Positions 12,940 through 64,000 of a stretch of DNA of 64,000 nucleotides are shown in pieces. Numbering within the stretch: position 1 is the first letter of the stretch; the number at the start of each line of letters is the position of its first letter. The translations under genes and the position numbers were made by a program. Source of the DNA: Macrostomum lignano (lineage: Eukaryota). The stretch spans positions 372,001 to 436,000 of the forward strand of contig NIVC01000040.1 of NCBI GenBank assembly GCA_002269645.1, written 5' to 3'. Under the pieces are notes generated by a model. It saw nothing but the letters and a program-made list of their open reading frames with translations, made no database searches and was not told where the DNA came from.

Positions 12940-13076
12940 GTAACGGAAGTATCGGACGGAAGTTACTTTTTTTTAAAAGTACCGCGGTACCAGAACAAGT
13001 GCAGGAAGTTACTTCCCTTGGAACCGGAAGTTACTTAACCAGAAGTTACTTTTTCAGAGTAACTTTCCCAACACTG
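12940..13076 (-). mobile_element. hAT-like transposon end truncating the LINE
   Basis: Minus strand begins CAGTGTTGGGAAAGTTACT with repeated AAGTAACT/AGTTACTT subterminal motifs. LINE RT homology stops exactly here. Degraded ..NMLLFLK* near 12830-12900 resembles a hAT dimerisation-domain end. No partner TIR seen. Confidence 0.45.
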
Positions 13077-13682
13077 GTCAGACTGGCCGTCCGCCGTCAC
13101 CACAGCAGCTTGAGTGTCGCGATACAGTGCCATGACAGCGTCGAGTAGCTGCTGGGGTACCCGGTAAACTCGCAGGACAAAGGGGAGCGCGGCTCTCAGC
13201 ACCGAGTCAAACGCCTTTCGAAAGTAAACGAAGACAATGATCACGTAGACTGGCGGATGCGCGCCTCCTCGATGACACGGCGGAGTGCGAGGATCTGTGT
13301 CATTGTACCGCGTTGCGGCCGGAATCCGTTCTGCTCGTACCGCAGGTACGGGTCCATGCAGCACCGGCCGACTGCAGACGATATCGAGCAGCAGCCGCTT
13401 GAAGAGCTTCGCGGTGCAGGACATCAGCAAGAATCCGCGGTGGTCTTCTTTCCCAGTTGTCCCTGCCTTTTTTGAGATCTGCACGATGTGCGTGACGGTC
13501 CACTCGGGGGGGTGCAGGATCGAACGCGGGCGAGTACGCGGTTCAATGACGCTTACACAGTGGAGCCGCAGCGCTTTGACTGGGACTTCGTCGGGGCCTT
13601 GCCGCCTGTTGTTTTCCGAGAGAACAGCACAACGTCCTCCGTGGTGACTGGTCTGGTGCAGAAGTCCTCGGCTGGGAGCGGC
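13077..13682 (-). pseudogene. LINE (RTE-like) ORF2 fragment, reverse transcriptase N-terminal part, frameshifted
   Basis: GPDEVPVKAL, PPEW..IVQISKK, YFRKAFDSV, YRVPQQLLDAVMALYRDTQAAVVTADG motifs. Confidence 0.85.
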
Positions 13683-13687
13683 ATGTC

Positions 13688-16600
13688 TGTTGTGCTTTGA
13701 GGCAGCGTGGCCAAATGAATAAGATGCGAGAAGCGATTGCAGGGTAGAAAAAGTCACAAAGGCTTGAAAGGCCGGTGCACACTATATTATAGTTAAACTA
13801 TACAAACCAGCATGATTCAGCAAACATCAAACCCCCCACCCGGCCTAGGCCGGTCTGGGCAGACAGGCAAACCTCCCAGCCAATCAGAACGCAAGAACCC
13901 TAACCGGCGTACAAGCCGCATACACAACATCACCCCCCTTGAAAAAGCAACGAGAAGCAACGCATGGGGAACACAACAGTCCATAGAGTGCGCACAGTAA
14001 AAAATTATTCAGTTCGCGAATCAACTCTGACTGAACCGGACCGGAGCTCTTCTTGTTCGGCCGCTTCGTCTCGGCGGTGTCAGCGGCGTCTCGTTGGCCG
14101 GCGCCCTTGCCAGCGGCGCTAGCGCTGGCGCTGGTGTTGGCGCCATCAGAGCACAGAGTTCGGCATCGGTCGTGTCGCTGTCCGCTGACGGTGTACTCGG
14201 AACGCGAACCAGGTTGTCAGAGTGCCATTGCGTGCCTTCGTCTAGCAGCCAGGACTCTGGGCCCAGCCGCCGGGTGATCCTTCGAGTCTCGCCGAGCCTT
14301 GTCGCCAGCTTTTGAGACGTCTGTGGCCTGCGGACGCGCACGGAGTCGCCAGCCCGCAGTCGCGAGGGTCGGGCTCCTCGGCGCCGGTTGGTGGCCAGCC
14401 TGGCCTTCTCCTTGTTGGCCTGGACTCGACGCTCGGTCTCCGATGGCACCGTTGGACTCAGGGGGCGGATGCCTCGACTCCACTGGCTCAGAGGTCCTCG
14501 AAACGGCCGACCGACCATCTGCTCAGCCGGCGTCAGGCCCGTGGTTGCATTCGCTGTCGACCGGTAGCATTGCAGGAACTCGCGGATTGCCTCCTTGAAG
14601 CTGATGGTCGCTCGAAACAGGACAGGAAGTCTGGCACAACGTTATCCTTTCCAGGCTTATACTCGACGTTGAAGTTGTACTGCAGGAGCCGGTCGTTCCA
14701 TCGGTGGATGCGCAGCGGCTTGTGCCCGGTGCCTTGGGTACACAGTAGTGCCTTGAGAGCCAAATGGTCAGTGCGCAAAGTCAGCCGTCAACCGTAGGTG
14801 TAGACGTGCCAACGCTCGAGAGCCCAGAAGCACGCCAGGGCCTCTTTCTCGCTAGCTGAGTATCTGGACTCCGTTGGCGTCAGTGCTCGCGAGGCGTAGG
14901 CCACCGGCTTCTCTGACTCGCCTACGCGTTGAAGCAGCACCGCGCCAAGCGCGAAGTCAGACGCGTCGCACTCGACGATGGTGTCAGCGTTGCAGTCGAA
15001 GTCGGGTATGAACTTGGCGAAGTAGTTGTCGGTTGCCAGGAATGACGAGACGCTCCGTGCTGTCGTCGGTGCCGGGATGCGGAGCACGTCTTCGATGTTA
15101 GACTTGGACGGTCGAACTCCATCGGCTGAGATCCTGCAGCCTAAGAACACGATCTCCGGGACGCCAATCTGGCATTTCTCCTTGTTCAGCGTCAGCCCAT
15201 TTTCGCTAAGACGTTCGAGTACTGTCTGAAGCCGCTTGCCGTGCTCGTCAGAGTTGACGCTGTGAATGACGATGTCGTACACTCTTGATGTCGGCCAGAA
15301 CGGTTGAAAGGATTTTCTGGAAGCAGGTACCAGAACTAGAAATGCCGAACGGGACCCTAGTGAACTGGTAGAGCCCGCAGTGAGTGATGAACGCGGTCAG
15401 CTGCCTACTGCCGGGGTGCAGTGGGATCTGCAGGTAGCTCTGCTTCAGGTCCAGCTTGCTGAAGATCTGCGCGCCTGCAAACTCTGCGGCCAGCTCCTCC
15501 TGGATCGGCACGGGAAACTTATCCGGGTTGATCGCTTGGTTGCAGTAGCGCAGATCAACGCACAGTCGCAGGTCGCCATTCTTCTTCTTGGATACGACTA
15601 GATTGGACACCCAGGGAGAGGCATCAATCTTCTCGATGACACCTGCGGCCTCCATCTTGCTTAGCTCGTCCTTCACGCAGTCCTGAAGTGCCAGCGGCAC
15701 CCGGCGCAGCGGCCGCGGAACTGTCGGTGTCGCATCCTGGCGCAGCTGTGGTCGATGGCAAAACTTCTTGGCCATACCGATGCCGTCGAAGATTCCCGGG
15801 AACTCTCCAGCGATATCATCGATGCTGTTAATTGCGTTGACTCGGATTGAGAATCCCAGCTTGTCGTGCGATGAAGAAGCGGCAGATGGCGGACTTGCCG
15901 CGGTGCACAACGCACAGCTCTGCGGTCCCGAGCACGTCAATTGCAGAGCCTGTGTACGAGAACAGCTGCTTCGGAGTCGGCGTGATGACCGGTTGCTTCG
16001 ACAGGCGTTTCACGGTCTTCTCGTTGATGATGTTGACTCTTGAGCCCGTGTCCAATAGGAGCCTGACGTCGATGTCAGCAATGCTGCACGTCGCAAAGTT
16101 AAGGAGCGACGATTCATATTCTACCGCAGATACTTCGTATGGCTCGTCGTCTACGTCCTTTACGGTGCGAACCTGGCGTCGCTGTCGGCAGCAAGCTTTG
16201 AAGTGTCCGACCTTGTGGCAGTGCAAGCAGGTCTTGTCCTTCGCTGGACACTCTAAGGCGCGGGCGGCGTGCCCGGCCCTCACGCAGTTGCCGCACCGTG
16301 TCTCTGCGCCGGATTTCTGCGGTGCCGCATGCTTGGGTCCCTTGCGTGATGGCGTACGCTGGCTGACCTTCTGGATGCGGGACTCGTCCTTGTCGCTCTT
16401 GCCGTCGCGCAGCTTCTTGGCGTCGTTGATTGGAGATTCGACCTGAATCGCCAATGTCATCGCCCTATCCAGCTCGAGCTCCTTCTCCATGAGCAGTCAG
16501 TCGCTCTCGAATGCGCGGCGAATGGGTCTTCTCGATGATCTGGTCCCGGATCATCTGATCATGGAGAGCGCCGCATTTGCAGTCTGCTGCGAGTTCTCGG

Positions 16601-17200
16601 AGGGCGTCGACGAACTGGCTGACTGGCTCGCCTGGCATCTGGGCGCGCGACTTGAACTTGTAGCGGTTGCTGATTGTGCTGTGCGACTGACCGAAGATCG
16701 TTTTCAGTGCAGCCACCAGCTTGTCAAATGTAACAACGCTCATTGTGGACAGATTCCTCAGCGCGTAGACTCTCTGGCCTTCCTCGCCTAGTAGATGAAC
16801 AAGAATCGCCTTCTTGCGTGCATCCGATGCTTCATTTAGGTCCAAGGCCTCCAGATAAATCTTGAATCCTTCGATCCAACGATTCCAAGGCGTGTGTGGC
16901 TGTCCTGGGTGGGCGAGAAACACGCGTGGCTCGGAAATGCTCAGACTCGTTGCCATGTTGTGCTTTGAGGCAGCGTGGCCAAATGAATAAGATGCGAGAA
17001 GCGACTGCAGGGTAGAAAAAGTCACAAAGGCTTGAAAGGCCGGTGCACACTTATATTATAGTTAAACTACACTAATACCAGCATGATTTAGCAAACATCC
17101 AACACCCCACCCGGCCTAGGCCGGTCTGGGCAGACAGACAAAACCCCCAGCCAATCATAACGCAAGAACCGTAACCGGCGTACAAGTCGCATACACAACA
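13688..17200 (-). mobile_element. Ty3/gypsy LTR retrotransposon, internally deleted (3513 bp), inserted in the LINE
   Basis: LTRs 13688-13929 and 16956-17200 (TG..CA). TSD ATGTC at 13683-13687 and 17201-17205. PBS TGGCAACGAG (16946-16955). PPT AAGGGGGGTGA (13930-13940). Confidence 0.95.
14021..16956 (-). pseudogene. Degenerate gypsy gag-pol
   Basis: Gag MATSLSISEP..PWNRWIEGFKIYL; zinc knuckles including CLHCHKVGHFKACC; protease LLDTGS; RT LCVDLR/FSKLDLKQSY/VPFG with YxDD reduced to YD; RNase H ECDASDFALGAVL..ASEKEALA. Several frameshifts; integrase core absent. Confidence 0.9.
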
Positions 17201-17205
17201 ATGTC

Positions 17206-17996
17206 CAGTGGGAGCGCAAAGCTGGCGGGCAGTGGCGACGCGGGCGCGATCACGATGCCGGCGAAGAAGTCGCGCAATTCATTCCTGCACTTCTCCGGGG
17301 TGTCGCTGGCCAGGTTCAGCGCCACGCGCTTTCTGCGCCCCGTCGGACGGCCATCCACACTGCGCGGCCAGGTGCAGTGATGGACCTGACGGCGTCGTCG
17401 ACAGCGGCCTGTTGCCGCTCATCCAGAAGGCGCTCAAACGCGTCTTCAGCGTCGCCCGTGGGCCGCCGGTTTCTGTGGAGTCGCTCGATGTTGAGCCGCG
17501 CCTACCTGATGGTCGGGTCGCTCTGCCAGACAGGCAGCAATTTTTGCGCTGGCCGCATCAGTGGGACCGTCTGCTCTTCGGCGGCTCTAACGGCGGTGCT
17601 GATGTCTGCAAATTAACGCTTGATGCGGGTGTCCAACAGAGCGCAGATAGTAGCGCCGTGGCCGCTGCTTTGGCGGTCCGTAGAGCTGGTCGCGGAGCCG
17701 CTAAGTCGCAGATCAGGAGTCGGTGGTCTGACCGGAGAGTCAGCGGAGCCATGGTGTCGCAGTTGGTGACGCGGCGCTCGCGAGTGCGAACCAGCGCATG
17801 ATTGAGTTGCGCCAGTCTCCTCTCGTGGCGTTCCGTCTGCGTGCGTTCCGTCGCCTTCTCTTGCAGCCCGCAACGGTGACCAGGCGGGCAGGGGCTTGCG
17901 GAACTGGGTGTTCGCGGATATCCTCAAAATTCTCAACATCGATGTTGTCATTGAAACTAAAAAGCTCAGATCTGGAGGTGCTCCCGGTCCAGACAA
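17206..17996 (-). pseudogene. LINE ORF2 upstream part (APE endonuclease C-terminus and linker)
   Basis: RSDHRLL motif. Removing the gypsy and one TSD copy restores ALPLDMPLPAEDFCTRPVTTEDVV..GGKAP, continuous with 13077-13682. Confidence 0.8.
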
Positions 17997-25329: not shown

Positions 25330-25499
25330 CGTGTGGTTACTGAAAATTAGAATGTAAAGAAAATGTATGAGGATGTAATTATTTCGTTTACATGGTTCCC
25401 ATAACAATAAGCTTGGTACAAACAATTAGAAATGACGAGTTTTGGAGAGACTTTTAAGGATTTCTACGAATAAACTACGACTAAGTTAACTCTCGGAGT

Positions 25500-26400
25500 T
25501 GTGATATTTCGGGTTTGTGCTATTTCGGGTTCATGGTATTTCGGGTTTGTGCTATTTCGGGTTTGTGCTATTTCGGGTTCATGGTATTTCGGGTTTGTGC
25601 TATTTCGGGTTTGTGCTATTTCGGGTTCATGGTATTTCGGGTTTGTGCTATTTCGGGTTCATGGTATTTCGGGTTTGTGCTATTTCGGGTTCATGGTATT
25701 TCGGGTTTGTGCTATTTCGGGTTTGTGCTATTTCGGGTTCATGGTATTTCGGGTTTGTGCTATTTCGGGTTTGTGCTATTTCGGGTTCATGGTATTTCGG
25801 GTTTGTGCTATTTCGGGTTTGTGCTATTTCGGGTTCATGGTATTTCGGGTTTGTGCTATTTTGGGTTTGTGCTATTTCGGGTTCATGGTATTTCGGGTTT
25901 GTGCTATTTCGGGTTTGTGCTATTTCGGGTTCATGGTATTTCGGGTTTGTGATATTTCGGGTTCATGGTATTTCGTGTTTGTGATATTTCGTGTTGGTCA
26001 TATTTCGGGTTTGTGATTTTTCGTGTTTGCGATACTTCGGGTTTGTGATATTTCGGGTTAGCGATATTTCGGGTTAGCGATATTTCGGGTTTGCACTATT
26101 TCGGGTTTGTGATATTTCGGGTTTGTGATATTTCGGGTTCATGGTATTTCGTGTTGGTCATATTTCGGGTTTGTGATATTTCGGGTTTGCGATACTTCGG
26201 GTTTGTGATATTTCGGGTTAGCGATAGTTCGGGTTAGCGATATTTTGGGTTTGCACTATTTCGGGTTTGCACTATTTCGGGTTTGTGATATTTCGGGTTT
26301 GTGATATTTCGGGTTTGCGATACTTCGGGTTTGCACTATTTCGGGTTAGCGATATTTCGGGTTTGTGATATTTCGGGTTTGTGATATTTCGGGTTTGTGA
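25500..26400. repeat. 15-bp minisatellite with variant patterning
   Basis: TATTTCGGGTTTGTGC / TATTTCGGGTTCATGG type units, drifting to TATTTCGGGTTAGCGA-type variants rightwards. Confidence 0.95.
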
Positions 26401-27094
26401 TCCCCCCACTACGATTATAGTAGTGTGTAACGCAAACAAAAAATGCAAGTCTATAAAATTGAGGACAGGAAAACCTTATACAATATTCGCATATATTATA
26501 AAGTCATCAAAATGTTTTTTGTGTAACATTAAACAAAGTTACATAGATTCCATCCTCTGCAATTTTTTAAAGTTAGACTTCAATTAATACGACAGCTGGG
26601 CAAAAGTTTGCGGACTGTGTTTTTTACTCTAAACGACAGGAATGAATTTTTTTAGTAACAAAAGTCAGTAAACAATAAACAAAGTCCGGAAATTTCTGCA
26701 ACAGTTATCGTACAACGGTTTAATAGGAGCCAATGAAAAAATATTTACACAAATTTTACAGTAGTAAAATTTAAGCAGCCAATATCACATTGCTTTAATT
26801 TAAAAAAATTACCAAAGCCATTATTCATGCACTAAAAAGCATACACACACCATGAGGCCTATGATTGGAATTAAAAAACTACGAGCTATGCAAAAGTTTA
26901 CGATAAAAGCTAAAAATGCTACTTAACAAGGCATTGTTTAGTAGTATAGTAAGTATAAGCTACAGATCGTGGGGTGATAAAATTGAGAAATTAACATAAG
27001 ACAAGTAAAAATATTCTATTATTTTTCTAAAAAATTGGTTAGAAGTTTCTTGTACTATCAAATTTCAGATTAGCTTATACCAGTTCGCACAAGG

Positions 27095-27311
27095 TCACAG
27101 CGGATCAATGCAAATTTCGCTGTTGCTCGGTGGGTCGCTAATCGGGTCTGAAATAAGTGGGAATGCGAGCTAATACGATAAAAATTTTACTTGACGTACA
27201 TGTAGTCTGTGTTTTGTTCGGTACACCTTAACTAATGGATGCATACATATTAACAGACAGGCAGACAGACAAGTAAAGGAGACAGACAGGCAGACAGACA
27301 GACAGACAGGC

Positions 27312-27350
<39 letters not shown>

Positions 27351-27456
27351 GAGACAGACAGACAGACAGGCAGACAGACAGACAGACAGACAGACAGACA
27401 GGCAGACAGACAGACAGACAGACAGGCAGACAGACAGACAGACAGACGAGTAAAGG

Positions 27457-27497
<41 letters not shown>

Positions 27498-27572
27498 GGC
27501 AGAAAGACAGACAGACAGGCAGACAGACAGACAGACAGACAGACAGGCAGACAGACAGACAGACAGACAGGC

Positions 27573-27644
<72 letters not shown>

Positions 27645-27653
27645 GAGTAAAGG

Positions 27654-27690
<37 letters not shown>

Positions 27691-27713
27691 GGCAGACAGG
27701 CAGACAGACAGGC

Positions 27714-27758
<45 letters not shown>

Positions 27759-27761
27759 GGC

Positions 27762-27837
<76 letters not shown>

Positions 27838-27903
27838 GAGTAAAGGAGACAGACAGACAGACAGACAGACAGGCAGACAGACAGACAGACAGACGAGTAA
27901 AGG

Positions 27904-27944
<41 letters not shown>

Positions 27945-27967
27945 GGCAGAAAGACAGACAGACAGGC

Positions 27968-28000
<33 letters not shown>

Positions 28001-28027
28001 GGCAGACAGACAGACAGACAGACAGGC

Positions 28028-28064
<37 letters not shown>

Positions 28065-28067
28065 GGC

Positions 28068-28139
<72 letters not shown>

Positions 28140-28148
28140 GAGTAAAGG

Positions 28149-28185
<37 letters not shown>

Positions 28186-28204
28186 GGCAGACAGGCAGAC
28201 AGGC

Positions 28205-28273
<69 letters not shown>

Positions 28274-28305
28274 GGCAGACAGACAGACAGACAGACGAGT
28301 AAAGG

Positions 28306-28342
<37 letters not shown>

Positions 28343-28349
28343 GGCAGAA

Positions 28350-28390
<41 letters not shown>

Positions 28391-28405
28391 GGCAGACAGA
28401 CAGGC

Positions 28406-28473
<68 letters not shown>

Positions 28474-28482
28474 GAGTAAAGG

Positions 28483-28519
<37 letters not shown>

Positions 28520-28542
28520 GGCAGACAGGCAGACAGACAGGC

Positions 28543-28615
<73 letters not shown>

Positions 28616-28647
28616 GGCAGACAGACAGACAGACAGACGAGTAAAGG

Positions 28648-28688
<41 letters not shown>

Positions 28689-28763
28689 GGCAGAAAGACA
28701 GACAGACAGGCAGACAGACAGACAGACAGACAGACAGACAGGCAGACAGACAGACAGACAGGC

Positions 28764-28843
<80 letters not shown>

Positions 28844-28852
28844 GAGTAAAGG

Positions 28853-28893
<41 letters not shown>

Positions 28894-28895
28894 GG

Positions 28896-28945
<50 letters not shown>

Positions 28946-28977
28946 GGCAGACAGACAGACAGACAGACGAGTAAAGG

Positions 28978-29018
<41 letters not shown>

Positions 29019-29021
29019 GGC

Positions 29022-29082
<61 letters not shown>

Positions 29083-29330
29083 GGCAGAAAGACAGACAGA
29101 CAGGCAGACAGACAGACAGACAGACAGGCAGGCAGGCAGACAGGCAGACAGACAGACAGACAGACAGACAGACAGGCAGGCAGGCAGACAGACAGACAGA
29201 CAGACAGGCAGGCAGGCAGGCAGACAGACAGACAGGCAGACAGACAGACAGACAGACAGGCAGGCAGGCAGACAGACAGACAGACAGACAGGCAGGCAGG
29301 CAGGCAGACAGACAGACAGGCAGACAGACA

Positions 29331-29363
<33 letters not shown>

Positions 29364-32300
29364 CCATCGAACCAGTCTCACCAGTCATCTCAGCCTCAGC
29401 TCGCACCAGATCCATCAAATCGCCATCCTGATGCAGCAGGGTGCCATCAGAACCCGCAGCGTTGGACGGCAGCTCCACAGTTGGCTGAGAGCCGCCGGCA
29501 GCTGGATCTTCATCATTGGTAGTATCGGTGTCATTCGAGTCGTAATCATAGTCCACTAATCTCCCAGCAGACGAGGAGGAGGAGGTCTCTTTTGGTGTCA
29601 CCTCGTGAAAGGCTTCGCCGTGCTCCAACAGCCAGGTGAACAATTCGCCGCGTTGCTTCGCCGGCAACTTGCAGTAGTTGATGAGGCGTCGATACAGACT
29701 CCCAACAGTGAGTCCCAGTTGTCTGCAGTCAGCTTGAAACTGCTGCAACCTGTGCTGGAAATCTGTGTCGCCAAAAGTGAAATAGACACAGGAGCGGCCA
29801 GTCACAGCGCAGGCCATCAGCTGGATTAGCGACTTCAATTGTAGATCGCCGCCGAATGCGCCGCAACCCCAGTTGCCCGTGGCAACGGGACGACGCTTGG
29901 ATTTATTTTTAACATTGGCCGGACCGCCAAATCCTACGAGAGCTTTGTGCAGCTCTCTGTCGATAGCGGATTTGTTAAACTGTTGTTTGTAGCCTGCGGC
30001 ACCGCGACTGTAGCATCTGGCGTCAATGGCAACCAGCTTGGTTACCAGGCGACGGTTGGTGTCGCGAGGCCGAGTATCGGTGTGATCTCCGTTCCATTGG
30101 AATGTGCCTGTTGGTTGGGATGGAGAGAAAGGAGCCATGAAATGAGAGATGAGAAATGAGAGATGAGATAGGAGAGATGAGATAGGAGAGATGAGATAGA
30201 AGAGATGAGATAGGAGAGTCGATATAGGCGAGACGAGAGAGAAGATATTCTGAGAAAGGATAATAATAATAATATATGTACAACCGACAGCTCAGCGCAG
30301 CTATTACGCGGCGCATCTGAAGGCGTCAAGGACTGGGGGGTCGCCACACACACCCTCAATTACCCCAGCTAATGCTGGCAGCCATTTTACAGCTGGGTGA
30401 ACTGAGGCCATGCAGAGTTAAGCGTACGTCTTGCTCAAGGACACAAATTGTTCCGAGTGGCATCGGGAATCGAACCCCAGACCTTCAAGTCGTAATTTGG
30501 ACGCTCTAACCACTGGGCTACAACCTTCTGAATCTGAGAAATAAATAAATATGATAAGACAATATACGACTACTTTTAGGGATATCAAATGAGGATCAAG
30601 ACAATAAAATTAGAGAAAAAACTTAGCAGCCACTCACTGGAGTAGCCAGTGTAGTTGGAGTAGCGTTCGGCTCCGGTGATCCACAGCGCTTCGCCGTCCT
30701 CCAAGGACTCGGCCAGCAGGCGGGAGAGCAGCAGCTCCGGACAGATGAGGAAGCGAATCTCTTCCTGCATGTTGGGATGATTTGAAAGTGACTTAAATGT
30801 ATAAAGGGAAATTTATCGTAGCTAGCAGGAGGATCTGGGAGGCTGGCCCAGCAACTGAGGATCTGGGAGGCTGGCCCAGCAACTGAGGATCTGGGAGACT
30901 GGCCCAGCAACTGAGGATCTGGGAGACTGGCCCAGCAACTGAGGATCTGGGAGGCTGGTCCAGCAACTGGGGATCTGGGAGGCTGGCCCAGCAACTGAGG
31001 ATCTGGGAGGCTGGTCCAGCAACTGGGGATCTGGGAGGCTGGCCCAGCAACTGAGGATCTGGGAGGCTGGCCCAGCAACTGTGGATCTGGGAGGCTGGCC
31101 CAGCAACTGGGGATCTGAGAGGCTGGTCCAGCAACTGAGGATCTGGGAGGCTGGCCCAACAACCAGGGATCTGAGAGACTGGTCCAGCAACTGGGGATCT
31201 GAGAGGCTGGTCCAGCAACTGGGGATCTGGGAAGCTGGCCCAGCAACTGGGGATCTGGGAGGCTGGCCCAGCAACTGGGGATCTGAGAGGCTGGCCCAGC
31301 AACTGGGGATCTGAGAGGCTGGTCCAGCAACTGAGGATCTGGGAGGCTGGTCCAGCAACTGAGGATCTGGGAGGCTGGCCCAGCAACTGAGGATCTGAGA
31401 GGCTGGTCCAGCAACTGAGGATCTGGGAGGCTGGCCCAGCAACTGGGGATCTGGGAGGCTGGCCCAGCAACTGAGGATCTGGGAGGCTGGCCCAGCAACT
31501 GGGGATCTGGGAGGCTGGCCCAGCAACTGGGGATCTGAGAGGCTGGCCCAGCAACTGGGGATCTGAGAGGCTGGCCCAGCAACTGGGGATCTGGGAGACT
31601 CGCCCAGCAACTGGGGATCTGAGAGGCTGGCCTAGCAACTGGGGATCTGGGAGACTGGCCCAGCAACTGGGGATCTGGGAGGCTGGCCCAGCAACTGAGG
31701 ATCTAGGAGGCTGGCCCAGCAACTGGGGATCTGGGAGGCTGGCCCAGCAACTGGGGATCTGAGAGGCTGGCCCAGCAACTGGGGATCTGAGAGGCTGGCC
31801 CAGCAACTGGGGATCTGGGAGACTGGCCCAGCAACTGGGGATCTGGGAGACTGGCCCAGCAACTGGGGATCTGAGAGGCTGGCCCAGCAACTGAGGATCT
31901 AGGAGGCTGGCCCAGCAACTGGGGATCTGGGAGGCTGGCACAGCAACTGGGGATCTGGGAGGCTTGCCCAGCAACTGAGGATCTGAGAGGCCTCACTCTG
32001 CATTACCAAAAAACCCGAGCGCACCTGCACCAGGCCGCGCCCCAGCACGCCGCCCCCGATGTAGGCGTTGGCGAAGTCCACCTCCAGCATGCCGGCACCG
32101 TCATCCTCGATGGTGCCCTCTGCGGCCGCCAGCAGATCAGGCAGCAGTTCAGTCCGAGCTGACCAGTCTATGCGTTCGTTTATCACTCGACGACTAAACG
32201 TGACAACGCCCAGAGGATCTGCGAGAGTTGTACGCTTTAACAATTATGATTGGAACAAAATTGAATCAGTCAGTCAGTCAGAGACACACATCAAAACCAG

Positions 32301-35151
32301 GCAGAATTTAGCTGACTTCACTTTTGTCCACTGTCTTCTACAGAACTCTCAATAATCTGTTTAACTGTCAACCGCACTCAGCCGAGTGCGCAGGAGAGGT
32401 TATATTATAGCCTGCTTTTGGGAGAGTCTATTAAAACTTTAAGCAATTCCAATTCTTCTATCACGGAACAAAGCAATTTTATTATCGGTAACCGAATAGA
32501 GATGAAATTTACTAGCAAAGCTGTTCTGCTACTGGTAGGATTCGTTCTAATTCTAAACAACCAAATTGAAAGCGTCCAAAGTGTACCAGCTGGTCAAGTT
32601 TCGAGCAAGTCAATCATGTTTCGCAGTCCGGCTGAACTCAAGCAGTACCTGAGAACGTTGAACGCTTTCTATGCCACTTTGGGACGGCCCAGGTAATTTA
32701 AATTCGTTTATATTCGCCATATTCACCACACATCGAAAGTCAAATGGTCGCTATGTACACTCTGTACAGTATTGGCGCGCTTGTACATATTTTTATACAA
32801 GAATTATTTATTCAATATTTCAGATACCGCAAGAGGTTTCACTTCGAAGCCTGAGTCAAACTGACCGACTGACTGGGAGGAACACCAAAAAAGCAAGGAT
32901 AATACAAAGCAATCTTGGACAAACCGTCAATAAAAAAATATAAAAGCTGGATATGCAAAATAATCAGCAATCAGAAAAACTAATTACAATGGATTGATGC
33001 TTGCTTATTTTGATTATTTATTAACTTTTTAGTCCGGGGTTCGATTCCCCATCTCACTGGAACAATTTGTGTCCTTGAGCAAGACACTTAACTCTGCATT
33101 GCTTCAGTTCACCCAGCTGTAAAATGGGTGCCAGCATTAGCTGGGGTAATTGAGGCTGTGTGTGGCGACCCCCCAGTCCTTGGACTGAACAGCCGTACGC
33201 AGCCTTCAGATGCGCCGCGCAATAGCTGGCCCATTAGGGCAGGTGCAATCAATTATGATTATCATTAGTAGTCGAAAAAATTAATCCCTAACCAAACAAA
33301 GTGTTGATAATGAATTAATTACCTTTAGTAGTAACTCTTTGGAAATAGTTGAACAAGCATTTCAGCTTTTCAATTCGGCGGGGGCAACCTGAACCGGCTG
33401 GACCTCCGGATGAGAACAGGCTGAAAATTAGTAGTACATCAGAAGAAGATGGTTAATAATCATAATACTGACAGAATGCTTTACATAATCCACTTCCATC
33501 TTATAACTCTCGAATGGTAAAATATCTACTCTTAACACTAAACCTTAAGGTTTGTGAGGGATTTCAAACCCCCAGTCGCTAACCCTAACCCTAATCCTTC
33601 GCCCCAGTCCCTAATCCTTCACCCTCAGTCTCTAATCCTTCACCCTCAGTCTCTAATCCTTCACCCTCAGTCTCTAATCCTTCACCCTCAGTCTCTAATC
33701 CTTCACCCTCAGTCTCTAATCCTTCACCCTCAGTCTCTAATCCTTCACCCTCAGTCTCTAATCCTTCACCCTCAGTCTCTAATCCTTCACCCTCAGTCCC
33801 TAATCCTTCACCCTCAGTCTCTAATCCTTCACCCTCAGTCCCTAATCCTTCACCCTCAGTCCCTAATCCTTCACCCTCAGTCTCTAATCCTTCACCCTCA
33901 GTCTCTAATCCTTCACCCTCAGTCTCTAATCCTTCACCCTCAGTCTCTAATCCTTCACCCTCAGTCTCTAATCATTCACCCTCAGTCTCTAATCCTTCAC
34001 CCTCAGTCTCTAATCCTTCACCCTCAGTCTCTAATCCTTCACCCTCAGTCTCTAATCCTTCACCCTCAGTCTCTAATCCTTCACCCTCAGTCTCTAATCC
34101 TTCACCCAAAAAAAGTAAACAAAAGCCAATATACTCCAACTCACGTGCTAAAATGTATGGTAGGGAAGTTGGCGTATTCCCTGTTAGCAAAGCTTCGCCT
34201 AGGAAAGGTGCTAAAAAATGCGTTAGCCAATAAGCTGGCCACCTGTAGCTGACTGAGCGTCACCTTGAGCTGATAGCCGCACCTCAGCAGAGGCGGAGGC
34301 GTAGTAACCAGATGCGGCAGAGCCAAGGCCAGCCTCACCATACCAGGCAAGACACGGTTGAGAAAGTGCCTCATCTCTCCCCTACCCAACTCCTCAGTTA
34401 GCAGACAATTGAGACTATCCAAGCACAAGCTAGACTGCCTACGCCCGCTGCACACGTTCAACACCGTAGCCAAATCGTCTATACCAATGGAGCTTGCTGG
34501 CTTGAGTTGATTCAAACTGTGCTCAATAGCTGACCATCGACTGGCATTACTGGGAGAGCAGGGCATTCTAACATGGCCGGAGTCCCATCTGTCAGAGAAC
34601 TCGGTTGGCCAAGGCTGCGGCGGCTGGCTGGATCTTGCCTGCTCGTAGAAATTGTCGATTCTAAATAGTACAGAGTGTCCTAGTCTAGGAGGGCAGCTGA
34701 AGGGCAGCCGGGCAAGATTCGGCTCAGGCCTCAAAGCCTCGAGCTGGCGACGCCAGTCGCGACAACTGGATGTCGATGCGACCGTCGACGAGCTGACGGC
34801 TCCGCCAGTAAGAAAATGCTGCAACCGCTGCGACTCCTCGTCATTGTCGTCGGTTTCCGTTTCTTCTGCTTCTTCCTCCGCAATCGGCTCTGTAGCGGAG
34901 CTTGTAACACTGTCGTCTGTTGGGACTCTCTTGACCTGGCTCTTCTGCTGTTCTGGATCTGCTGAAGCAACAGGATCAGTGTCCGATCGATTCAGCGAAG
35001 CCGGCGGTGGATTGCTAGACTCGCCAGCTTTTCTCGGGCTCCGACGCGTCGGTGGCGTTTGCTGAGAAGCCCGATGCTTGCGTTTTGTTGCTGCTTCTAG
35101 GGGAGACACGTCGGGTTGCTCCGGCTCTTGCTGAATCTTTCTACGCTTCAT
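27095..35151 (-). CDS. PARG: Poly(ADP-ribose) glycohydrolase, 6 exons
   Basis: Exons 34145-35151, 33323-33420, 32025-32218, 30638-30764, 29382-30107, 27095-27147 (last exon tentative), phase-consistent. Motifs [43 protein letters not shown]|[12 protein letters not shown] (catalytic GGG..QEE), [30 protein letters not shown]. Confidence 0.95.
27252..29362. repeat. 2.1-kb (GACA)n microsatellite with recurring interruptions, PARG intron 5
   Basis: GACA/GGCA runs with about 11 GAGTAAAGGA interruptions. Confidence 0.98.
30120..30245. repeat. GAGAT-rich simple repeat, PARG intron 4
   Basis: GAGATGAGATAGGA-type units. Confidence 0.85.
30260..30525 (-). mobile_element. tRNA-derived SINE with CORE-like central domain, near full length
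   Basis: A box TAGCCCAGTGG, B box GGTTCGATTCC, GTGTCCTTGAGCAAG..TTAACTCTGCATGGCCTCAGTTCACCCAGCTGTAAAATGG, (ATT)n tail. Confidence 0.85.
30828..31990. repeat. 28-bp minisatellite, about 41 copies, PARG intron 3
   Basis: GATCTGGGAGGCTGGCCCAGCAACTG(A/G)G; period 28. Confidence 0.97.
32502..32854 (+). CDS. npy/npf: Neuropeptide Y/F precursor, 73 aa, 2 exons, antisense within PARG intron 2
   Basis: Exon 32502-32692: signal peptide [18 protein letters not shown].. then [24 protein letters not shown](R). Phase-2 intron in the final Arg codon, as is typical of NPF genes. Exon 32824-32854 gives [14 protein letters not shown]-like near 32400, AATAAA near 32928. Confidence 0.88.
33031..33230 (+). mobile_element. 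5'-truncated copy of the same SINE, PARG intron 2
   Basis: B box GGTTCGATTCC, GTGTCCTTGAGCAAGACACTTAAC.. and GCCTTCAGATGCGCCGCG shared with 30260-30525, opposite orientation. Confidence 0.85.
33579..34107. repeat. 21-bp minisatellite, about 24 copies, PARG intron 1
   Basis: CCTTCACCCTCAGTCTCTAAT; preceded by CTAACCCTAACCCTAA. Confidence 0.97.
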
Positions 35152-37040: not shown

Positions 37041-40000
37041 TCAATGCAGCCACTGCCTATAATCCTCTGGCACCGCCGTTAGCAAATTTTTCGATTCCAA
37101 AAACTTTCTACTAAACAATTTAGCGTAGTAGCGCTGGCCCAAGTCGCACAGGCAGGTGACAATCACGTGACCAGGCCCCATCTGGCGGGCGGCCTGCACG
37201 GCGCCGGCCACGTTAATGCCGGACGAGGCGCCAACAAAGAAGCCCTCCTCATGCAGCAGGCGGAACGTGTGCTCAACCGCCATTGCGTCGGTGATGTGCA
37301 GCGCGTGATCCACAGGTGCGCCAGACAGGTTCTGCGTCACCCGGCCCTGCCCGATGCCCTCGGTGATGGAGCCGTCGCCTTGGCGTTTCAACTCGCCATG
37401 GGTGAAATAGTTGTACAGTACGCTGCCCTCAGGGTCCAGTAAGAAGGTGCGCACGTCCGGGTTGCGCTCCTGGGGGTTCCAGGGGATGAAGATAGCTTCA
37501 ACTACAATTTCACTTAATTTCTGTATCACCCTCTCTTCCCTGTTCTATGTATCTCCCTCTCCCCCTATCTGTATCTACCTCTCCCCAAGTCTGTATCTCC
37601 CTCTCCCCCAGTCTGTATCTCCCTCTCCCCCAGTCTGTATCTCCCTCTTCCCCAGTCTGTATCTCCCTCTTCCCCAGTCTGTATCTCCCTTTCCCCCAGT
37701 CTGTATCTCCCTCTTCCCCAGTCTGTATCTCCCTCTTCCCCAGTCTGTATCTCCCTCTTCCCCAGTCTGTATCTCCCTTTCCCCCAGTCTGTATCTCCCT
37801 CTCCCCCAGTCTGTATCTCCCTCTTCCCCAGTCTGTATCTCCCTCTCCCCCAGTCTGTATCTCCCTCTCCCCCAGTCTGTATCTCCCTCTTCCCCAGTCT
37901 GTATCTCCCTTTCCCCCCAGTCTGTATCTCCCGCTTCCCTGTCTGTATCTCCCTCTCCCCCAGTCTGTATCTCCCGCTTCCCTGTCTGTATCTACCTCTC
38001 CCCAAGTCTGTATCTCCCTCTCCCCTGTCTGTATCCCCTCTCCAATCTGTTTACACACCAAGCCTTATTCTATTACTCTCAATCCCGTGATGAGCGCGTC
38101 ATCTGTCACTGCCTGTAGTCTTTATCTATTTTTTATTCAACTGCTCATAAAAACTGTCTGCAAGCTTCTCTAGACCCAAAAGGGGACACTATAGCTACTC
38201 TTATCTTAACCGCTCGGGCTAAGCAATTTATTAGAGAAAATTCACACCTTGTACCAGCCCTTACCCTGAAACTGAAATAACTAGGTCGGCTTATCTAAAA
38301 AACGATAAGGTAACAGTTTTAGCTAGCCAACAAAATATTACAATTTTCCCTACCTTGAGAAAAGTGCCAACACCGGCCAGTGTACCCCCGGTGCCGGTGG
38401 CGAAGGCCACAGCGTCAACCCGGCCCTCGGTCTCCTCCCAGATCTCCGGACCAGTGGTTTCGTAGTGGGCCAGCCTGCATAGAAATTGAGCATAGCGTAC
38501 TTAGTTGGGGGGTATTTGGGTAGCTATATAGTGAGTAGTTCAAGTATATCCAGATTGTAAAGCAATATTATATGATTCCTATATGGATCTCTACCTCTTG
38601 AGAGTCTTAACCAGACGTAAGAATCTCATTCCTTAGTCTGGAATAAAGATTTCATGATAATCTCACCCTTAATTCTAATTAAGCTTAAACCCTACTGAGA
38701 ATCTCATTTTTAATTCTAATAACCCTTAAATCCCCACGAGAATCTTAACGCTTAGAGCCTTATCGTCATGAGAATCTCACCTTTAATTCTAATTACCCTT
38801 AAACCCTAATGAGAATCTCATCATTTAGAGCCTTATCGTCATGAGAATCTCAACACTTAGAGCCTCGTTTTCATGAGAATCTCACCGGTTAGAGCCTCCT
38901 CGACCTCATGAGAATCTCACCACTTAGAGCCTTCTCACTCTTCTGAGAATCTCCCCGCCTAGAGGCTCCTCGACCTCATGAGAATCTCACCACTTAGAGC
39001 CTTCTCACTCTCCTGAGAATCTCCCCGCCTAGAGCCTCCTCGACCTCATGAGAATCATATCCCTTAGAGCCTCCTCACTCTCCTGAGAATCTCACCGCTT
39101 AAAGCCTCCTCACCCTTATAAGAATCTCAGCACTGAAAGTTTCACCTAAAGTCTCAAACAAGAACTAAAGATAGACATGCGCAGCGCCCTTTAAGTCTTA
39201 TATACTCGTATATTTCTAATAATAAATTTTTACTCCTGATACGCTCCTATCTCGTAAACCAAGCCAATAACCCAAGGGTGCCTGTTGGACTTTAATCACA
39301 CTTTAACTTAAGTTTAACCGAACAAACGCACAACTAACGTTTCAAGAAAGCTAAAAATTCTACCTGTGATAAGGCACAACTGTAAAAATACACTATACTA
39401 TATAATTGATAACAGATTCTCAACAGTTGGAAAATGACTGCATGAGACTAGTCTAAGAGCGCAACACGCAGTGTTAGAGTGCTATGATTAAAAAGTAGCG
39501 AACAAATATGATGTACACGTTAGCATGTACATGAATGCACAATGCACATAACTGCCCTGACTCATAGTTACAAGGTGTATCAGACGTTTGCTACAGCCAG
39601 GGGAGCAAAACTAACAGCAAGAGTATATTAGCATCATGGCCTGTTTCCGTTCTAAATTGATCTGTGATCTGGCATTTCATTCCCTGTGTTTTGTGACTTC
39701 CGGATATCTTCAGTAGCTTCCGGGATCTGCGATTTGGCATCTCATTCCCTGTGTTTCGTGACTTCCGGATCTCTTCAGTAGCATCCGGGATCTGCGATCT
39801 GGAATCTCATTCCCTGTGTTTTGTGACTTCCGGATCTCCTCAGTAGCATCCGGGATCTGCGATCTGGCATCTCATTCCCTGTGTTTTGTAACTTCCGGAT
39901 CTCTTCAGTAGCTTCCGGGATCTGCGATCTGGCATTTCATTCCCTGTGTTTTGTAACTTCCGGATCTCCTCAGTAGCTTCCAGGATCTGCGATCTGGCAT

Positions 40001-41750: not shown

Positions 41751-42749
41751 CTATCGTCCACGCCCGATGCGACCAGGACCCCGAACTGGATGAGTGACCA
41801 GACGCGGCCGAGCTACTGGCACGGACGGCACGCAGCCCAAGGCCTCGGTGCGGCCAGAAAAACCGTCCAGTTCGAGAAGCAGTGGCGGCGACAGGGGGCG
41901 ACAGCGCTGCAGCTTCTGGCATCGACTGCTGCCACGCAGCTGACGCAACGACGGCGTCAATGTCTCTGAGCGCGGCGGAACAGCGCTCGGATGCAGACCT
42001 TTAATCGGACCAAAATAGTAGTCGCAGGACCGCTGGGGACCAGGCGAAAGATTGACACGAAAATCGCACTCGTAATTGTAGCACGATTTTGCTTTCTTTT
42101 TATTAGCCTTTCTAGCGCTATTGGTATTGGCTGTCGCACTGAATAGGCTGGATATTGTTGAACTGGTCAGTACAGACGGCGTCTCAACTCGAACTACGCG
42201 CTGGCTATGGCTGTCTTGATTCTTTTTTTGATTTCCAAACTGCCAATTGTTGCAGTAGTTTTTCTGCTGCAGCTCTTCGATATTTGACTGGCTTTGCTTC
42301 GTTTGAGACCGCGAAATCTCGACAGATTCCGGCAGTTCAAACGCGATGGGATCTCTGACCAGAGATCGGACAGCATCGGCGCTCGGGTACAGCTCAAGAT
42401 CGTCCTCAAAGTGAGTCAGTAGCTTACCAAAGCTAGAGAACAGACGGCAGGTGAGGCTAATATTGGCTGTTCCTGCCGGCAATAAAGTGATGAGATCACC
42501 GGACAAGCTCACGGGGCCGGCAAGACAGGCGTCGCCTTGTGGTCCCGGAGACATACCAGGACAATCGCCATTCGCTGCAACGCCGGTGATGACACTTCTC
42601 GATTTCACAGACGGCGATGTAGACTCGTTCTGGCCAAGAGCCGTAGCTAGACGCTCTGCGCTGTCTGTATGCACTGCTGCGCCGGCTTCGGACCTCTCAG
42701 CAGCGGTGCCGGTTCGACTGCCGAGCATACAGTTCAAGTGACGCAGCAT
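41751..42749 (-). CDS. Uncharacterised 332-codon ORF (or large exon)
   Basis: Long non-repetitive ORF with a possible acceptor (CGTAG) just upstream of the ATG; no domain recognised. Confidence 0.45.
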   Translation of the reverse strand: MLRHLNCMLGSRTGTAAERSEAGAAVHTDSAERLATALGQNESTSPSVKSRSVITGVAANGDCPGMSPGPQGDACLAGPVSLSGDLITLLPAGTANISLTCRLFSSFGKLLTHFEDDLELYPSADAVRSLVRDPIAFELPESVEISRSQTKQSQSNIEELQQKNYCNNWQFGNQKKNQDSHSQRVVRVETPSVLTSSTISSLFSATANTNSARKANKKKAKSCYNYECDFRVNLSPGPQRSCDYYFGPIKGLHPSAVPPRSETLTPSLRQLRGSSRCQKLQRCRPLSPPLLLELDGFSGRTEALGCVPSVPVARPRLVTHPVRGPGRIGRGR

Positions 42750-49217: not shown

Positions 49218-50351
49218 AATATATATATATAGCGACACAGAGTAGCACACAAGACACAAAGAGATCTAGTTGACTAGGCGCGGACGCATTCGCAGAACAA
49301 TCGAGAGGGGCAAGTCATGGCGGACTGGGGGCTGAGCCCAATGGCCTGCAAGTCAGTCAGAAACGTACGTATCATTTAGCGTCACAGATTGGCCTTGTCA
49401 TGGCCACGCGGCGCAGGCGCTCAGTGGGTTGATGCAGGAGAGCCTGCGCCAGAGGATTTTGCTCGCCGCGGCCGTGGCTTCTTAGGCAGTGGCCAAGAAA
49501 CATCTGACGGCGTTTACGGATAGTGCAGCTGAGCGCGGGAACACCAGCGTGAGTCATCAGGTCCCATCAGGCCCCAGGGCATAGCGGAGCAGCGACCTGT
49601 AGTGAGCATCCAGGGCTTGCTGTCGCGTCGCAGTCATTGGCACAGCCTCCATGCCATATAGGAGAATCGGCTCAATGGCAGTGCGGAAAAGGCGCATCTT
49701 TAGGTCGTCGTCGCGCGAGCGGTTGAATTGAAGACACTCCTGAGCATGCGTGCCGCACGCCAGGCCTGAGTCCTCCTGTCAGAGACAATGGTGTCGGGGC
49801 TCAAGACAAGGGAGCCGAGGTAGCGGAAGTCCTCGCACACATTGACGACTTCTCCATTTGGAAGAGCTAGCGCAGGGGTAGTTGCAGTGCCCACGTGGAG
49901 CACCTCAGTCTTGGATGCGTTGATCACCAAGCCAACTCGGGTGCCCTCTTCGTAGAGTCTATAGACAGAGCCCGTTGGTTGGGCAGCAGCCGGATCGCGA
50001 AACAGAAGGGCAATGTAGTCAGCATAGACGAGAGCAGGCAGCGAGACGGCGGGATGTCGGGAGCTTCGGCGTGAGACCAGCACATAGCCATCATCTTCAC
50101 ACAGGCATCGGCGAAGAACATAGTCTACCACAACAATGAAGAGTAGTGGAGCCAGCGTGTCGCCCTGAAGGACGCCGGAAGTTGTGCTGAATTCTTCAGT
50201 GGGGCCGTCGCTCGACTGAACAAACGCTCTTGAATCGCTGTACAAGTCCATCACAGCAGCTACATGTACAAGTTCGGAAGGAACGCCATAGTAGGACAGA
50301 ATCCATGGAAGTGCAGGTCTGGATCAACGCGACCTGCAGGAGAGTCGAACG
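49218..50351 (-). pseudogene. 5'-truncated LINE (RTE-like) RT fragment with (TA)n 3' end
   Basis: KAFDS, LPWILSYYGVP, SGVLQGDTLAPLLF, LVYADYIALL, GLVINASKTEV, FRYLGS; frameshifted. Confidence 0.9.
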
Positions 50352-62600: not shown

Positions 62601-64000
62601 TGAGGTGCCGGGCGTGTTTTGATGTACTGCACTGCACCTGACTCACCTGAGTCCAATTATGAGTAACTCTAACTAGCCAGCCAGCCTAACTAACCAAACC
62701 GGCCTACTCCGGTGTACGCTGCTCTGCGTACTTTTTCTCTCTCTCCCCCTTGACATGATAATATTCAGTAGTGATCGATTCTGAGTTTTAAGCCCACTTA
62801 CTTGTTGTCTTTTAAGCCTATATATTGGTCTCGCCACCTACCACCTCGTATCTCACAATCATTGCAATAATTCGCTCATCTCAAATACACAACTTCGTAC
62901 TTGACTCAAACCAAGCCCACGGGCGGCCTTGTCATCGTTTACTGGGCGCGACTTGACAATGGCGTCGCAAGCAAACAACTCCGAACTAAACTTGGATGAC
63001 CCAGACACAGCCGAAGCCTGGCTGCTCAGCTTTGCGGCTGCCGCACGAACCAAGAAACTGACGGACACAGAAGAAGATCGGCAGATCACCGATCTATTCC
63101 TCGCCAGGGCAGGTCTCAAGGCACTGAGAACGCTGTCCCTCATGGCTGCCCCGACCAGCCTGGAGAAAAAAACATTTGAACAAATTCGAGACATCATCAA
63201 GGAGACAATCCGGCCCAAGAAGCGCCTCGATATTGCCGAACGAGCAAAATTCCTCGCCCTCAGGCAGGACCCAAGCGAAAGTGTCGCCTCCTACTACCGC
63301 CGACTCCGTGCAGCAGCGGCTACGTGTAGCTTTGAGAAGCTCGGGACGAAACAGTCAAGCGAGGACGAGCTCATCACCATGCGGCTCGTGGACGGACTCG
63401 CCTCTGTGGACCACAAACATAGACTGTTGGAGAGAATGCAAGCTACCGACATGCTGCTGAACGAGGTGCTGCAAACACTTGAGCAACTTGAGCAAATCCG
63501 CTGCTACAACACCAGCACCGGGGCCGCTGCCAACACCGAGGCCAGCATCGCCTATGCAGGGCGGCGCGGCACGCCCCACAGCCAGCGCCGGACACCAGAC
63601 CACCGAGGAACATCAGCAAGACGAAGTGCCAATATTGCGGCGGTTTGCACCAGCAAGGCGCATGCCCTGCGTTCGGCAAGCGGTGCACCGCCTGCAACAA
63701 GAAAAACCACTTTGCTGCCGTATGCAGGTCCCGCACCGTGCATCTAGAGACCTGGGAGGAGAACGAAGGCGCCGAGATGGAGCGAGATACTGCCAACGTC
63801 TTCGTCATCAGACCGAAGCGCAGAGAGCGGAACGGCATCTTCCGGCAGGTAAAAATCAACGGCAAGGAGCTGCAAATGCAGGTAGATACGGGCGCTGATG
63901 TGAGTCTCATTCCACGGGGCCACTGGGAGACACTTGGATGCCCAGCACTGAGGAAATCCAGACGAATTCTGAGACAGTTCGACGGATCGATCATAAGAAC
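62601..64000 (+). mobile_element. 5' part of a second Ty3/gypsy retrotransposon (runs off the window)
   Basis: Putative LTR 62601-62958 (TG..CA), then PBS-like TGGCGTCGCA at 62960 and gag-protease coding sequence. LTR limits tentative. Confidence 0.85.
62959..64000 (+). pseudogene. Gypsy gag-protease with one frameshift near 63600
   Basis: MASQANNS..AERAKFLALRQDPSESVASYYRRLRAAAATCSF; after the shift CQYCGGLHQQGAC, CTACNKKNHFAAVC and protease QVDTGADVS. Confidence 0.85.

Follow-up and report, generated by a model that had tools for sequence, protein, structure and literature searches.

An unannotated NPY/NPF-family gene of Macrostomum lignano with arginine in place of the amidation glycine in three genomic copies

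Across the NPY/NPF/RFamide superfamily, an amidated C-terminus is taken to define the peptides and to be required for their function. Among the closest described systems are the Schmidtea mediterranea genes npy-1 to npy-11 (Collins et al. 2010, PMC2953531), which encode a signal peptide and one peptide of ~30–40 amino acids (aa) with a core of the form ...YL..LN.(Y/F)(F/Y)....RPR(F/Y), followed by K-R and a short tail; amidated forms of some of these planarian peptides have been detected by mass spectrometry (PMC2953531). The NPF gene of Moniezia expansa, as far as it is set out in PMC7314547, which cites Mair et al. 2000, has the same small-precursor and intron layout. The intron concerned lies between bases 2 and 3 of the codon for the C-terminal Arg and is a hallmark of the NPY/NPF genes of animals ranging from flatworms to vertebrates (PMC7314547; PMC2953531). 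Here we describe an NPF-like gene on the plus strand of a 64-kb stretch of Macrostomum lignano contig NIVC01000040.1 (GCA_002269645.1, assembly Mlig_3_7). We refer to the whole of this stretch as the window and use its numbering throughout, the coordinate in the record being the window coordinate + 372000. The gene sits, in antisense orientation, within a 1.9-kb intron of the gene for PARG, poly(ADP-ribose) glycohydrolase, and has in common with the flatworm prohormones the signal peptide, the single peptide, the core with its K-R and short tail, and the intron within the Arg codon; its best pairwise matches are to Smed NPY-1 (36% identity over 59 aa) and NPY-5 (41% over 37 aa). It differs from them in the residue next to the peptide: Gly follows directly after the last residue of the peptide in 11/11 planarian precursors (PMC2953531), whereas Arg does so in 3/3 Macrostomum copies. 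Judged from its sequence, which matches the family far beyond chance, the gene is a real, unannotated NPY/NPF paralogue, and we put the probability that it is a real and maintained gene for a non-amidatable NPF-family peptide at about 60%.

We regard the gene as a genuine member of the NPY/NPF family because of its Pfam match, the outcome of a database scan, the position of its intron and its predicted signal peptide. Specifically, the predicted product scores 37.9 bits (E = 1.7e-9) with Pfam PF00159 (NPY/pancreatic hormone), for which the gathering cut-off is 28.7. Its aa 40–65 align to profile positions 10–35 of 36, and the last position, a Gly, is left unmatched; an R66G variant made in silico scores 42.5 bits and matches profile positions 10–36. 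When 1.84 billion representative proteins were scanned with HMMER, 12 matches reached E < 1e-3, and 11 of these are NPF/NPY-type. The remaining match, P0012, is an unrelated repeat protein of 802 aa. A word-index protein search with the 73-aa product returned no match. The intron (CCC AG/gtaatt...tttcag/A TAC) occupies exactly the family-specific position, as does the intron of two environmental NPF genes. The C-terminus, R-P-R-Y, has the form Arg-x-Arg-(Phe/Tyr), and a preliminary description of the locus had remarked on the combination of a Tyr ending with an NPF-type intron. This combination is normal in flatworms, given that planarian NPY-5, -7, -9 and -10 end in Tyr and have the same intron (PMC2953531). 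By simple rules the precursor consists of a signal peptide and a single 38-aa peptide, compared with ~36–40 aa in the family, and the convertase site K-R that comes after Tyr-Arg is kept in the three copies. Flatworm NPFs as a rule have Tyr residues at positions 10 and 17 counted from the C-terminus; counted likewise, the peptide encoded here has Tyr at position 17 and, at positions 10 and 9, F-Y rather than the usual Y-F. The preliminary description had called the locus an NPY/NPF precursor, a call borne out by the Pfam match, the predicted signal peptide, RPRY, the KR site and the phase-2 intron in the Arg codon.

The gene has two coding exons. The coding sequence of exon 1 (32502–32692, plus strand, 191 nt) starts with the ATG at 32502–32504 and ends GGA CGG CCC AG in splice phase 2. 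By inspection and simple rules its first part (32502–32582) is predicted to encode a signal peptide (aa 1–27) composed of a basic n-region, MKFTSK, a 12-residue hydrophobic core (mean Kyte-Doolittle value 3.5 over 11 residues) and then NNQIESVQS. Cleavage predicted at VQS/VP, which conforms to the −3/−1 rule and is based on simple rules only, would leave a mature peptide of 38 aa, and translation places this NPF-like peptide, up to the AG of its last Arg codon, in the rest of exon 1 (32583–32692, plus strand). The intron (32693–32823, plus strand, 131 nt, GT...AG, phase 2) splits the Arg codon of the C-terminal R-Y. Its donor, GTAATT, begins at 32693 (CCCAG/GTAATT), the unspliced frame halts at once (AGG TAA), and its acceptor, ttattcaatatttcag, is AT- and pyrimidine-rich. 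Exon 2 begins at 32824, and its coding sequence (32824–32854, plus strand) reads A TAC CGC AAG AGG TTT CAC TTC GAA GCC TGA, with the stop codon at 32852–32854. The codon at 32828–32830 is CGC (Arg), and together with the KR cleavage site at 32831–32836 it forms the triplet R-K-R (32828–32836). The spliced product is 73 aa long and comprises the signal peptide, the ~38-residue peptide ending GRPRY, R-K-R and a 5-residue tail, FHFEA. A putative polyadenylation signal, AATAAA (32929–32934, plus strand), lies 75 nt past the stop codon, and given its presence there exon 2 appears to be the terminal exon, the signal being presumably in use; upstream, a TATA-like element, TTATATTATA (32400–32409, plus strand), ~95 nt before the ATG, may be part of a core promoter. 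On re-reading and translation, the sequence and splicing given in the preliminary description matched base for base.

The residue that directly follows the aromatic end of an NPY/NPF peptide is the amide donor for PHM/PAL. At the aligned position 14/14 relatives have Gly, and the window product is the sole sequence without it in the 15-sequence alignment; its codon there is CGC in all three copies. The absence of the amidation Gly, the central point of the preliminary description, therefore stands at 32828–32830. The gene is in the NPY/NPF family by descent, but its predicted peptide lacks the C-terminal amide by which the family is recognized at the level of the peptide. We note that three proteins that resemble Tyr-ending GRPRY relatives were not accepted as such. 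The apparent R-Y of P0013 and P0019 arises, as their contigs reveal, where the donor (CG/GTAT or AG/GTAC) is read through without splicing, and their true exon 2 encodes F-G-R; P0010 (GRPRY...), judged from its protein sequence only, has the same look of read-through.

Two further PALP-PARG loci, L009 on NIVC01000297.1 and L010 on NIVC01000298.1, are present in the same assembly; they were found via the cluster listing of a 332-aa open reading frame (ORF) that neighbours the gene, and then via their PARG proteins. Each runs collinear with the window for several kb, at 92–96% identity, and each contains the NPF-like gene, which occupies 404502–404934 on the plus strand of NIVC01000040.1, 5196–5872 on the minus strand of L009 and 4733–5450 on the minus strand of L010. 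All three copies have an intact 73-aa ORF with TAC CGC AAG AGR and the same start, donor, acceptor and stop, and their amino acid sequences are identical from aa 35 onward. The only difference in the coding part of exon 2 is a synonymous AGG>AGA in L009, which lies 8 nt after the C at 32828, a site outside any homopolymer. As a calibration of local neutral divergence among the copies we used the PARG exon at 34129–35151, where synonymous differences per synonymous site (pS) are 0.047 and 0.031 and the ratio of the non-synonymous to the synonymous proportion (pN/pS) is 0.17–0.27; this puts neutral divergence at about 3–5%. The body of the NPF intron differs by 5–9.5% substitutions and 5–52 gap columns, with donor and acceptor unchanged. 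The 3′ untranslated region (3′UTR) of L009 has a 30-nt deletion, AATAAA is found at about the same place in both other copies despite indels, and the TATA-like element is the same in L009 and differs by one T>C in L010. The comparison shows that the Gly-to-Arg change predates the split of the three copies and that the predicted peptide core has been constant since. The suggestion that the Arg codon marks a recent loss-of-function allele is contradicted by its presence, in an intact ORF, in three copies, which makes it older than their split.

Differences among the copies provide moderate evidence that purifying selection has kept the non-amidatable peptide core. In the core, processing site and tail (aa 39–73, 35 codons) there are four independent changes, ACG>ACT, GCT>GCA, TTG>CTG and AGG>AGA, all of which are synonymous, although 78% of random changes in this part would be non-synonymous (P = 0.0024). 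In the N-terminal part, by contrast, all six nucleotide changes are non-synonymous, resulting in K2D, N20S, Q32K, V33F and S34L (Fisher's test for the difference between the two parts, 0.005–0.008). The coding sequence has not a single indel among the copies, while the intron and the 3′UTR carry large ones. Furthermore, the 101 nt before the ATG show one difference from either other copy, compared with 2.5–7% in neighbouring non-coding DNA.

The alternative that survives best, although we consider it unlikely, is that the gene is a dead or dying paralogue, inactivated by the Gly>Arg change before the locus was triplicated, whose copies have been drifting neutrally and have not yet been disabled. 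Several observations speak for it and thereby weigh against selection having maintained the gene. In vertebrates, free-acid peptides of the NPY family are essentially inactive at Y receptors, and loss of the Gly is for that reason a priori a typical inactivating change; loss of this residue is indeed the classic way in which an RF/RY-amide peptide is inactivated. Besides this gene, the species possesses a canonical NPF gene, which could take over the function. At ~4% neutral divergence, 222 nt should have gathered only ~9 substitutions and ~1 indel, and the intact ORF is therefore weak evidence by itself. The nucleotide divergence of the coding sequence, 2.3–4.1%, is no lower than that of the surrounding DNA, and pN/pS over the whole coding sequence is 0.38–0.6, which is not clearly below 1. 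The signal of selection comes from just four substitutions, that is, from small counts, and the division into core and N-terminal part, which follows the Pfam match, was chosen after the data had been seen. Finally, the Mlig_3_7 annotation has no NPF-like coding sequence at any of the three loci, and a collection of 15 billion proteins contains no exact copy of the 73-aa product or of the 64-aa ORF that is read without splicing. Annotation pipelines often discard ORFs under 100 aa, and the absence from annotation and from the protein collection could simply reflect the shortness of the ORF. Set against the idea of a decaying relic are the exclusively synonymous changes of the core alongside the exclusively non-synonymous ones of the N-terminal part, the splice sites, start, stop and KR site that are intact in 3/3 copies, the lack of any coding indel when the 131-nt intron has 5–52 gap columns, and the near invariance of the 101 nt upstream of the ATG. 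For these reasons we favor maintenance of the gene over its decay.

It is very improbable, in our estimation, that the gene model is wrong and that another acceptor or a further exon supplies F/Y-Gly-Lys-Arg, making the peptide amidatable after all. The preliminary description had named such a downstream exon as something to be looked for, and a search of the window yielded none: the motif R[FY]G[KR][KR] does not occur in any of the six frames of the whole 64 kb, and tblastn and motif scans of the window detected no NPF-like paralogue elsewhere in it. A scan for acceptor-like sites downstream of the donor found a sole site followed by F/Y-Gly-basic, at 63884 (ag/A TAC GGG CGC TGA), which reads (R)YGR*. 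By chance alone the scan would be expected to give ~0.47 such sites, compared with the one observed. We rejected the 63884 site as exon 2, since it is 31 kb away and within a retrotransposon, beside a gag ORF, and is not preceded by a pyrimidine tract. Nearby alternative AG acceptors, such as one giving GRPRFHFEA, were rejected too, because without a Gly after the aromatic residue they create no amidatable end. As a positive control we applied the same exon scan to the two unrelated environmental NPF genes, in which exon 1 ends GRPR with a donor of the same phase, and obtained exactly one match per gene, the true exon 2 (ag/R TTC GGN CGN, that is, F-G-R). A model in the older ML2 annotation, P0011 (A0A1I8FTJ1), does connect the GRPR donor with another downstream exon, but this model is a chimera that runs on through the antisense of PARG and PALP and contains no F/Y-G. 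The near acceptor, on the other hand, is strong and is followed by Y-x-K-R, a stop codon and AATAAA, all of which are conserved in the three copies. With Arg in place of Gly, and with no other exon in the window that gives F/Y-Gly-basic, Gly-dependent amidation by PHM/PAL is precluded for this peptide.

An error of sequencing or assembly at 32828, or an allele private to the sequenced line, with G as the true base, would require only a single-base departure from the expected GGC in a long-read assembly, yet we give it virtually no credence, because TAC CGC AAG AGR stands in three diverged, separately assembled copies whose contigs differ at nearby sites, and there is no homopolymer at 32828.

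If the gene is maintained, as we favor, a plausible course of events can be outlined. The ancestral amidation Gly would have been converted to Arg, most simply by GGC>CGC. The precursor would enter the secretory pathway, where a PC2-type convertase would cut after the basic triplet; an essential, neuron-specific PC2 homologue is known from M. lignano (PMC4490696). An enzyme of the carboxypeptidase E type would then trim R-K-R, and the 38-aa peptide ...GRPRY would be released with a free carboxyl end, beyond the reach of amidation by PHM/PAL. Such a peptide might signal with a receptor pharmacology unlike that of the NPF-amides encoded by the canonical gene Mlig009822, and the candidate actions are agonism at a diverged receptor and weak or competitive binding to NPF receptors; it may also have no action at all. 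Of the options put forward in the preliminary description, we infer that the most fitting is that of a variant that is not amidated and has altered activity. The stronger proposition, that M. lignano keeps by selection a secreted NPY/NPF peptide that has a free C-terminal carboxylate and is bioactive or an endogenous competitor, we regard as doubtful and advance tentatively. We know of no earlier NPY/NPF-family ligand that works without a C-terminal amide. A literature search on GRPRY, on non-amidated flatworm NPF and on NPF pseudogenes found nothing relevant; the gene may already have been reported from expressed sequence tags.

Were the stronger proposition true, a bioactive free-acid peptide would imply either a receptor that has co-evolved with it or a built-in antagonist of NPF-amide signalling. 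The loss of the amide donor from a peptide whose core is unchanged across three diverged copies amounts to a natural test of the requirement for the amide against re-tuning of the receptor, and M. lignano is apt for such a test, as it offers RNA interference by soaking, transgenesis and a canonical NPF-amide gene as an internal comparison. If instead the gene is a silent relic, it would represent routine decay of a paralogue in a recently duplicated genome. That the gene is unannotated at three loci means that neuropeptide inventories of M. lignano are incomplete for short nested genes.

The host gene, PARG (PAA92746.1 / BOX15_Mlig023323g1), is on the minus strand, with exons at ~35151–34129, 32240–32058, 30770–30630 and 30111–29566. 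Its first large coding exon (34129–35151, located by tblastn) bounds the host intron on the side of higher coordinates, and the exon at 32058–32240, located by tblastn with PARG of M. lignano, a rotifer, an ostracod and a wasp, bounds it on the other; the ATG of the NPF-like gene is only ~260 nt from a PARG exon. The PARG ORF of the window is 87% identical overall to a Macrostomum lignano PARG model and ~97–99% identical outside gaps in the gene model. In the older ML2 annotation, P0011 comprises 22 aa of NPF exon 1, which it enters at an internal AG, followed by antisense PARG/cysteine synthase, and P0001 (A0A1I8FTI8) is a cysteine synthase fused to PARG. Fused ML2 models of this kind probably explain why one cluster at 90% identity mixes PARG, cysteine synthase and the unrelated 332-aa ORF. 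This single-exon ORF (41751–42749, minus strand) is the annotated gene P0082, has no Pfam domain and has a counterpart of the same length, PAA86035.1, at one paralogous locus; situated beside cysteine synthase, it may be a lineage-specific gene. A homologue search with the cysteine synthase exon returned only non-Macrostomum matches.

The window also contains repeats and mobile elements. A 2.1-kb (ACAG)n microsatellite (27253–29363) begins ~200 nt past the last PARG coding segment that was mapped and on the minus strand forms a long "CLSV" repeat ORF in frame with the PARG C-terminus. Minisatellites are found in the PARG introns that flank the NPF gene (28 bp x 41 at 30831–31991; 21 bp x 25 at 33591–34107), in an intron of cysteine synthase (22 bp x 23 at 37548–38043) and at 25499–26401 (16 bp x 56), and minisatellite copy numbers vary among the three genomic copies. 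About 100 nt past the poly(A) signal of the NPF gene, a stretch resembling a short interspersed nuclear element (33030–33200) opens with the tRNA T-arm-like motif GGTTCGATTCC; ARAGORN called no tRNA in the window. Other elements are a GC-rich long-terminal-repeat retroelement at 13000–17800 with pieces of PNMA/gag, aspartyl protease, RVT_1 and RNase H, a reverse transcriptase fragment at 49700–50254, a gag ORF at 62929–63747 (within a transposable-element stretch at 62929–63994) and a 766-aa DUF1258/DUF4218 transposase-like ORF at 3186–5486.

Three comparisons place the gene among known members of the family. The canonical NPF gene of M. lignano, BOX15_Mlig009822g1-3 (PAA66726.1, PAA79626.1, PAA75754.1), belongs to the same Pfam family and likewise exists in three genomic copies; its product is 30–38% identical to that of the window gene over the NPF core. 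The canonical gene is intronless and GC-rich and encodes three tandem short units, each SRPRF-G-K-R and amidatable, whereas the window gene has kept the ancestral intron and encodes one long peptide with no Gly. BOX15_Mlig009822g1 itself is found at 4001–4414 of L001 (NIVC01001537.1), and the NPF precursor P0008 of the krill Meganyctiphanes norvegica shares the three-unit arrangement, apparently by convergence.

Among vertebrates, seminalplasmin reportedly lost its amidated end and gained another role, a history attributed to Herzog et al. 1995. PYY2, the gene for which is that of bovine seminalplasmin (PMC2698874), is the nearest precedent known to us. Like the window gene it is an NPY-family duplicate, and its product is reportedly no longer a C-terminally amidated ligand of Y receptors. 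Its C-terminal region, however, has been remodelled far beyond one residue, and nothing suggests a comparable new role in Macrostomum. Within the flatworms, the planarian gene Smed-npy-11, described as an "atypical neuropeptide Y" (PMC2953531), resembles the window gene in that it has the gene structure of the family and departs from the RxR(F/Y)-amide rule. The two depart from it in opposite ways: Smed-npy-11 has lost the aromatic residue (RPRL) and kept G-K-R, and so is amidatable, whereas the Macrostomum gene has kept the aromatic residue and lost the Gly. By analogy, Smed-npy-11 shows that flatworm NPY families can tolerate atypical C-termini.

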